A DNA stretch of 63,803 nt, filler included, from Hyphochytrium catenoides (GCA_900088475.1; 5 parts of 5 records of this genome joined end to end with filler, not necessarily neighbours in it); one strand, 5' to 3'. Shown: positions 13,584 to 15,004, counted from the first letter of the whole stretch. Numbers and translations are program-made. The notes: generated by a model from the letters alone, not told the origin.

Positions 13584-15004
13584 ATGGAGGACTTCAAAGT
13601 TGATGCGTCCTTGCCTCAAGGAGTGGAGGGCCAGGAAGCGAAAAAGATCACAGCTGATGAGATTCAGGTGAGCATTCATAATCTAGAGCTTTGTCTACCC
13701 TCAAGCTGCGTGAGCTGCGTGGCTTCTTGCGTGGCCGCACTCTTATCCGGCACTTCCTTCCCCACGCGTCTGTGCCACGCAACCCTCTAACTCGAGGACC
13801 GACTTACTTGCTCCTTCTGGCATAACACCGCTTCGGGCTCAAAGACCATTCGCCTTTCGATCTGCAGGCAGTACTAGACGAGAATTCGGCGCTTATTGTG
13901 GAGATCATGAAGGTCATGGAGCAAGTCAAGGAAGCTGGAGGGGATGAGATGTCAGACCTCGTAAAGGGCAAGAAATTGACTTTGAGCGAGAACCTTACAA
14001 AGCTTGCACAGTGGGCTGATAAGCCTGGTAAATATGGCGGCGCAACTATCTTCCCAGAAGCCAAGGGTCCTAGGCCCTATCCACAGTTCTCTAGATTAAT
14101 GATGCTGTATCTCCCCAGACATCCCATCCTCTTCTTGTCGTCAGCCTTCTACCCCGGCCTCTGCTTGTCTCTGGTCAACCTTTGAACCTTACTGGCTTCA
14201 GCTCACCTCGTCTTTTGATGACTATGACTATTCGCAGAGCTGACAGAGCCCGTTACGGTCCGAAAAGTGGGCAGACCTCCAGGACGGCCTCCTGGACGTC
14301 CAGGAAGGCCGCCGCTCGGTGGAAGAAGAGGGGGCCGTGGCGGCAGAGGGGGCGGTAGGGGAAAGATCGTGGCGGCAAGGCCATCTCCCGCATCATCTAA
14401 TGCTGATGGGGATGATGGGCGGCGGCGCCCTCCTGCCGGTTCCATGAGGTCAAGAACTAAGACCTCCAAATACACTGGTGTATACTTTGATCGGAACAGG
14501 TCAGGGTCTAAATACATTCAAATCCTATCCTTGTTGGCTAGTAACAAAGCGCCTTTGTTTGCAGGTGGACGGCCCTAATATTCTACAAGGGCTCTCAGCA
14601 CTACCTGGGACGATTCTTAACAGAAGAACAGGCAGCTGATGCATATGCGAGGGCTCAAGCTGAGGTAGGGCACAGTATAAGGAAGCAGAATCAATCGTCA
14701 AGGGTTGGGCAGATGGAATCTATTTGGGGCCAGGAGAGAATCTCATCCGTTAAATGTGCATCAACTCTCTCTTGACAATCGCCATGTGCAGGTGAAGGAG
14801 CTTGGCCACCACATCTCTCGCGTGCCTTCCCGGAAACGGAGGAGACAAACAGAGGAGACTAATGAGGGAACTCCTAGTGCCCGAGAAGAAGGAGTTGAGC
14901 CGAGCAGCGCGAAGCAGGCCAAGGTTGCTGAAAGTGTTGAAGCAAAAGCTCTCCCTAACACAACCCTTCCAGGCGCCTCTCAAGAGAATGTGCAGACTGA
15001 ATAG
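13584..15004 (+). CDS. SSXT(SNH)-like domain + GRP/RGG repeats + AP2 DNA-binding domain protein, 5 exons, 272 aa
   Basis: Exons 13584-13667, 13868-14027, 14238-14499, 14565-14664, 14792-15004; all GT-AG, 819 nt in frame. N-terminus ITADEIQ|AVLDENSALIVEIMK...LSENLTKLAQWAD resembles the SS18/GIF SNH pattern. Middle RKVGRPPGRPPGRPGRPP-GGRRGGRGGRGGGRG. AP2: TSKYTGVYFDRNR|WTALIFYKGSQHYLGRFLTEEQAADAYARA. Confidence 0.85.

Follow-up and report, generated by a model that had tools for sequence, protein, structure and literature searches.

A predicted five-exon gene joining SSXT/SNH and AP2-like domains in Hyphochytrium catenoides

Exon structure and domain content of the locus

The window analysed here, a stretch of 63,803 nucleotides (nt) of Hyphochytrium catenoides DNA (GCA_900088475.1; five pieces joined end to end with filler), is eukaryotic DNA of ~50% GC, rich in (GA)n runs and with short introns of the GT-AG type, taken from a 61-Mb genome assembly of 4759 contigs. 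At positions 13584-15004 on the + strand it contains a predicted five-exon gene that would place an SSXT/SNH domain and an AP2 domain in a single chain, referred to below as the SSXT-AP2 gene. A first-pass annotation of this DNA had proposed one five-exon gene of 272 amino acids (aa) that joins three parts and whose introns split both domains. Reading of the sequence together with a script reproduced this model exactly: the exons join in frame, intron 1 lies within the SSXT domain and intron 3 within the AP2 domain. The coding sequence comprises 819 nt, giving 272 aa followed by a TAG stop codon at 15002-15004. Each of the four introns (200, 210, 65 and 127 nt) begins with GT and ends in GCAG, exons 1 to 5 are entered in phases 0, 0, 1, 2 and 0, and the script shows that, if left unspliced, the frame of each exon meets a stop 77-156 nt past its donor. 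The ATG at 13584 is the first to follow an in-frame upstream stop at 13500. The interval 13584-15004 is free of N runs and of scaffold or assembly gaps, and exons 2 and 4 each match only themselves when compared with their own genome, indicating a single-copy locus. The features of the gene are listed below in window coordinates.

13584-13667, + strand: exon 1, aa 1-28, beginning at the ATG at 13584
13647-13667, + strand: end of exon 1, the last seven codons (I-T-A-D-E-I-Q), start of the predicted SSXT domain
13668-13867, + strand: intron 1, 200 nt, GTGAGC...CTGCAG, phase 0, cutting the first SSXT helix
13868-14027, + strand: exon 2, aa 29-81 plus 1 nt, body of the predicted SSXT/SNH domain with both helices, its A-D end at 14015-14020
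14028-14237, + strand: intron 2, 210 nt, GTAAAT...TCGCAG, phase 1, with a read-through stop at 14183-14185
14238-14499, + strand: exon 3, aa 82-169, containing GRP repeats, RGG box, a basic/acidic spacer and the first strand of the probable AP2 domain
14270-14314, + strand: GRP repeats, exon 3
14318-14365, + strand: RGG box, exon 3
14444, + strand: internal ATG, exon 3
from 14465, + strand: first predicted AP2 strand, S-K-Y-T-G-V-Y, exon 3, with the Y-x-G-V motif right before intron 3
14500-14564, + strand: intron 3, 65 nt, GTCAGG...TTGCAG, phase 2, cutting the AP2 domain
14565-14664, + strand: exon 4, aa 169-202, predicted AP2 β3 strand and helix, W-T-A-L-I...Y-L-G-R-F...A-A-D-A-Y
14665-14791, + strand: intron 4, 127 nt, GTAGGG...GTGCAG, phase 0
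14792-15004, + strand: exon 5, aa 203-272, end of the AP2 helix, basic cluster, acidic/Ser-rich tail and the TAG at 15002-15004
14831-14845, + strand: basic cluster R-K-R-R-R, exon 5, resembling a nuclear localisation signal

By its sequence, the N-terminal segment belongs to SSXT/SNH as a domain. Exon 2 alone (53 aa) scores 30.4 bits against Pfam SSXT (PF05030; E 3e-7), above the gathering score of 26.2, so that Pfam's own threshold supports the assignment made in the first-pass annotation. The match spans model positions 12-55 of 62, and the unmatched first positions of the model are accounted for by the seven codons that close exon 1, on the other side of intron 1. A six-frame scan of the genome with the SSXT profile gave 33.1 bits at the exon 2 locus, and the SSXT hallmarks L-D-E-N...L-I and N-L..L-A..A-D are both present in this exon. 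A small profile of three rows combined exon 2 with both SSXT exons of the other SSXT gene of this genome (see below). Its top match in the PDB was 7VRB, the SS18-BRG1 crystal structure, at a weak E-value of 0.32; in this weak alignment SS18 residues I32, L54 and A65 are matched to I, L and A at exon 2 positions 10, 39 and 50. The binding of QLQ domains by SNH, taken as established when the locus was first described, is indeed documented by 7VRB, which shows the SS18 SNH with the BRG1 QLQ domain (PMC9117659). In the four-helix bundle of SNH and QLQ, the hydrophobic cores are made up of I32, L54 and A65, and mutation of all three to Glu largely disrupts the binding of BRG1 (PMC9117659). An AlphaFold model of exon 2 contains two helices predicted at low confidence (pLDDT, the predicted local distance difference test, of 68), and is compatible with an SNH fold while being uninformative.

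The C-terminal part is very probably an AP2 domain. A phmmer comparison of exon 4 with all PDB sequences gave two matches only, both to AP2 proteins: WRI1 (7wq5; E 6e-4, both WRI1 AP2 repeats being matched) and TEM1 (7et4; E 0.9). The alignments hold register from the β3 Trp onward and across the A-A-x-x-Y helix. With the β3-helix exon matching AP2 proteins alone in the PDB, the proposed C-terminal AP2 is upheld as AP2-like. Among the look-alikes of exon 4 found by protein language model in the Atlas, AP2 clusters take ranks 2 and 3 (0.86 and 0.85), which is a lead only. The SSXT-AP2 locus was not among the matches of a six-frame genome scan with PF00847 (gathering score 33.3 bits). A plant-type AP2/ERF domain contained in one exon (L003:1426-1674; G000:C3463, minus strand; PF00847 36.2 bits) was the only locus above the cut-off in that scan, and most AP2 domains of this genome may therefore be intron-split. 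Exon 4 is too divergent from this plant-like domain for alignment, none being returned by BLASTP. Relatives of the plant-like domain were sought for profile building; a word search found none, and a genome scan found two weak paralogues.

Between the two domains, exon 3 opens with four G-R-P cores (aa 93-107) followed by an RGG box (aa 109-124). Both the GRP repeats and the RGG box of the earlier description are thus present, while its AT-hook label proved loose: each core has Val or Pro before it and Pro or Gly after it, the preceding Arg of the canonical R-G-R-P is absent, and Pfam detects no AT hook (PF02178) on exon 3. Under the strict definition, the region is AT-hook-like only. From one G-R-P-P repeat unit to the next, the codons for Arg, Pro and Gly differ. 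Such varied synonymous codons argue that it is the peptide, and not the DNA, that is under constraint, and hence that the repeat is translated.

The proposed protein and the case for a single gene

The analysis shows the domain identities, and a gene structure that fits one protein. The reading we favour, to which we give an even chance, is that of a single DNA-binding protein (AP2 plus basic linker) whose SNH docks an SNF2-family ATPase bearing a QLQ; for this we infer the joining of the exons in one mRNA, binding of DNA, binding of QLQ and the choice of ATPase partner. The five-exon gene would encode a 272-aa nuclear protein in three parts, namely an SSXT/SNH domain at the N terminus (aa ~22-79), in the centre a basic linker of low complexity that holds the GRP cores and RGG box, and a single C-terminal AP2 domain (aa ~158-207) followed by the basic cluster and acidic tail. 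The AP2 domain, aided by the GRP/RGG linker, would bind DNA sequence-specifically, and the SNH would form a four-helix bundle of the SS18-BRG1 type with the QLQ of an SNF2-family ATPase. The DNA-binding protein would thereby itself carry or recruit the remodeller.

The SSXT half and the AP2 half are linked by gene structure only. Intron 2 is the sole connection between them; the phase 1 donor of exon 2 fits the acceptor of exon 3, and both splice sites resemble those of the other three introns. The frame of exon 3 is open only from 14228 and has no in-frame ATG before 14444. As a consequence, the 68 codons that precede this ATG are translatable only via the acceptor at 14237. In all, 72 codons upstream of 14444 are open, and these encode the peptide repeat. 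Codon-usage log-odds, trained on ~4000 codons from long open reading frames (ORFs) of the same genome, are positive in the frame of the model for exon 1 (+0.46 bits/codon), exon 2 (+0.40), exon 4 (+0.17) and exon 5 (+0.18). The score falls past the exon 2 donor, to 0.04 in the intron 2 read-through as compared with 0.40 in exon 2.

A number of observations weigh against this protein as proposed. Searched exon by exon, Pfam finds the AP2 model PF00847 on none of the exons, a result attributable to the splitting of the domain by intron 3. The likeness of exon 2 to SS18 in the PDB is weak by sequence alone: beyond the marginal profile match, a single-sequence phmmer search did not reach SS18, returning designed helical proteins only. 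SS18 and GIF also have a Q/G/Y-rich activation domain that is missing from this protein. For the GRP/RGG part (14240-14443), which is of low complexity, the codon score is close to zero and neither supports nor refutes translation. The in-frame ATG at 14444 could begin an AP2-only protein. RNA sequencing runs were looked for and none is listed, leaving the exon 2-exon 3 junction with no read across it. Finally, relatives of the SSXT exon among 1.84 billion representatives numbered zero, and the fusion is to that extent without evolutionary support. An Atlas search with the SSXT exon gave no usable match, and a scan of metagenome contigs gave one locus and no true relative. That locus (L005) was rejected as an AT-rich chance match on one 8-mer, with no AP2 nearby. 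The libraries used for these searches appear to exclude the records of this genome and its near kin, so a blank on relatives says little about conservation.

Several of these points would equally be expected if the locus made two products, an alternative that we consider unlikely. An SSXT-only protein would then be encoded by exons 1-2, ending by read-through at 14183-14185 (~133 aa) or at some other 3' end, and a separate AP2-only protein of ~122 aa would start from ATG 14444 under an internal promoter. The joining of exons by eye would in that case have produced an artefact, or the fusion would be one isoform among several. The placing of the internal ATG, seven codons ahead of the AP2 start at 14465, suits this arrangement, as do the neutral codon statistic over 14240-14443 and an exon 2-exon 3 junction backed by neither transcript nor orthologue. 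Small proteins consisting of SNH only do exist, yeast SNF11 being an example (PMC9117659). Against two products stands the spacing of the locus: the stop at 14185 and the ATG at 14444 are only 259 nt apart, and the SSXT exon lies 210 nt from exon 3, whereas neighbouring genes are separated by >1 kb. The read-through tail has lost the codon signal of exon 2, the splice sites of intron 2 are like those of the other introns and its phases match, and the 72 open codons ahead of 14444 encode a repeat with varied synonymous codons.

Candidate remodeller partners and neighbouring sequences

The genome encodes a Snf2/Brm-type ATPase (L017:1619-4486; G000:C4216, minus strand) as an open frame of 955 aa with a Gln-rich N terminus, an HSA domain (51.7 bits), SNF2 motifs and SnAC downstream. 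SNF5 is also present. At the expected distance upstream of the HSA, the Brm orthologue has a degenerate QLQ-like helix, recognised by eye within L017:3950-4150 (minus strand), for which there was no Pfam match and no PDB match. WRC, through which GRFs bind DNA, was not found in the six-frame genome scan, although intron-split domains could escape such a scan; no GRF-type adaptor is thus evident.

The only QLQ to pass Pfam in the six-frame scan belongs to a chromodomain-SNF2 ATPase gene on contig C2215 (32.6 and 28.9 bits), and the sole PDB match of this QLQ is the BRG1 QLQ of 7VRB. To our knowledge, QLQ domains are otherwise found in Snf2/Brm ATPases and GRFs, and not in chromodomain (CHD-type) ATPases. 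The gene lies at L007:6298-9605 and L008 (G000:C2215:164297-169237 onward). Its domain order is unusual, with the QLQ followed by two chromodomain-like stretches and SNF2, and only the second chromodomain passes Pfam Chromo (32.4 bits). Just upstream, an ORF at L007:6298-7257 has an AP2-like motif that is visible by eye and unrecognised by Pfam, and an ORF for a PHD-type zinc finger follows at L008:6305-6943.

A second SSXT gene (L002; G000:C1760:666-3761, minus strand) consists of long Gln-rich exons with a Lys-rich tail. It is probably the canonical SS18/GIF-type subunit, and for that role a better candidate than the SSXT-AP2 gene. Its SSXT domain is split by an intron at a position other than that seen in the window gene, the first SSXT exon alone scoring 22 bits, and the Lys-rich tail holds a P-G-R-P-K-K motif that resembles an AT hook.

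The presence of these genes bears on the identity of the partner. It could be that the fusion is real and its SNH docks on the QLQ of the C2215 chromodomain-SNF2 (CHD-like) ATPase, or on another QLQ protein, rather than on Snf2/Brm, in which case the protein would not be a BAF subunit; we judge this to be quite unlikely. It would agree with the C2215 gene holding the only Pfam-passing QLQ of the six-frame scan, with a PDB match to the BRG1 QLQ alone, and with an N-terminal region of the Brm orthologue in which the QLQ-like helix is seen by eye only. The second, Q-rich SS18-like gene could in addition serve the Brm complex. An intron-split QLQ would, on the other hand, escape a six-frame scan, and the SNH partner is a Snf2/Brm ATPase or a GRF in every system studied (PMC9117659). 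Prediction of a complex between exon 2 and the QLQ fragment of the chromodomain ATPase (L007:7738-7932) scored 0.11 (mark 0.34), which is evidence neither for nor against binding.

Returning to the single DNA-binding protein that docks an SNF2-family ATPase, a role as a subunit of SWI/SNF (BAF), as the first-pass annotation had put it, is one that we only infer. A more far-reaching version of the proposal, and a tentative one that we think somewhat doubtful, is a germline pioneer-type factor: with AP2 fused to SNH, the transcription factor would take part in an SNF2-family remodeller as a stoichiometric subunit that reads DNA, and its partner might be the QLQ-chromodomain ATPase rather than Brm.

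It is very unlikely that the gene at this locus is unexpressed or decaying, or that it arose by a recent accident of exon shuffling and has no function: it is single-copy, with no detectable relatives and no evidence of expression (no RNA run being listed), but its five exons are open, none of its eight splice sites is damaged, it retains the SSXT contact residues and the codon signal is positive in four exons.

The remainder of the window contains further genes and repeats. An ORF of 420 aa at 16314-17576 (minus strand) has a bZIP domain (PF00170, 30.8 bits) and, beyond it, a hydrophobic stretch at the C terminus, and may encode a membrane-tethered bZIP of the ATF6/bZIP28 kind. A single-exon gene at 19612-20535 (minus strand) encodes a DUF4336 protein of 307 aa, whose best relatives in a library of 5.8 billion proteins are 26-30% identical; this low identity suggests either a lineage that has been poorly sampled or near kin that are masked. 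At 22462-23586 (minus strand) lie exons of a developmentally regulated GTP-binding protein (DRG), with TGS at 65 bits and MMR_HSR1_Xtn at 44.8 bits, and + strand ORFs at ~3328-4646 look like pieces of a candidate ion-channel gene. Positions 1-12000 are dense in (GA)n/(CT)n microsatellites, which give rise to long Leu-Ser and Glu-Arg pseudo-ORFs in several frames. Short N runs occur near 870-905, 8950-9040 and 24130-24170.

Comparison with known systems

A full-text literature search for SSXT or SS18 together with AP2 retrieved no such architecture, only plant papers that name both families side by side. As far as this search reaches, it agrees with the initial remark that the architecture was not known to have been described, and the gene is best read as known domains in a new arrangement. 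As a rule, remodellers are directed to their targets by transcription factors that are separate proteins, and the SNH proteins that we know of (SS18, GIF/AN3, SNF11) are adaptors with no DNA-binding domain. If the proposal is true, evolution too has made the direct solution of SNH plus DNA binding, which is otherwise seen only in SS18-SSX, the result of a translocation in cancer, and in the GRF-GIF chimera of biotechnology. Both the engineered chimera and the logic of SS18-SSX would then have a precedent in evolution, and the protein would offer a compact 272-aa system in which to ask if SNH-QLQ tethering of a remodeller suffices to open chromatin at defined motifs. Its value is limited for now, the evidence coming from a single genome.

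The predicted AP2 region resembles AP2/ERF and ApiAP2 factors (PF00847) in being a single AP2-type domain of ~50 aa, with a Y-x-G-V strand, the β3 W, Y-L-G-x-F and an A-A-x-A-Y helix, and in having basic GRP-type motifs adjoining it. It differs from them in the SNH at the N terminus of the chain and in the 65-nt intron that interrupts the AP2 domain. Among SNH proteins, yeast SNF11 is small, binds the QLQ domain of Snf2 and has no QPGY domain (PMC9117659). The predicted protein likewise has an SNH and no QPGY domain; unlike it, SNF11 has no DNA-binding domain.

With SS18 and GIF/AN3 (PF05030) the predicted protein shares an N-terminal two-helix SNH, the sequence hallmarks and the I32/L54/A65 contact residues. 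In contrast to these proteins, the Q/G/Y-rich activation/condensation domain is replaced by a GRP/RGG linker and an AP2 domain of its own, and exon 2 has a 7-residue insertion between the helices relative to SS18 (in the weak alignment). As a whole, the predicted protein falls outside the SS18/GIF co-activator family, because the Q/G/Y-rich domain is absent and a DNA-binding domain present.

In plants, the GRF contributes DNA binding and a QLQ domain, while the GIF contributes the SNH. The GRF-GIF pair thus couples a sequence-specific DNA-binding module to an SNH that links it to SWI/SNF, a coupling that would here be achieved within one chain. The engineered GRF4-GIF1 chimera reportedly also places both modules in one chain. 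The SSXT-AP2 gene differs in being natural rather than engineered, and in its use of AP2 instead of WRC. It also has no QLQ of its own, so its SNH would be free to bind the QLQ of an ATPase directly.

The synovial sarcoma oncofusion SS18-SSX combines an SNH-bearing remodeller subunit with an added chromatin-targeting module in cis and thereby redirects the complex (PMC9117659). The arrangement predicted here is alike in having a targeting module in cis with the SNH. SS18-SSX, however, keeps the QPGY domain and targets via the SSX tail, which is not a sequence-specific DNA-binding domain, and it is the product of a somatic translocation, whereas the SSXT-AP2 gene lies in the germline.
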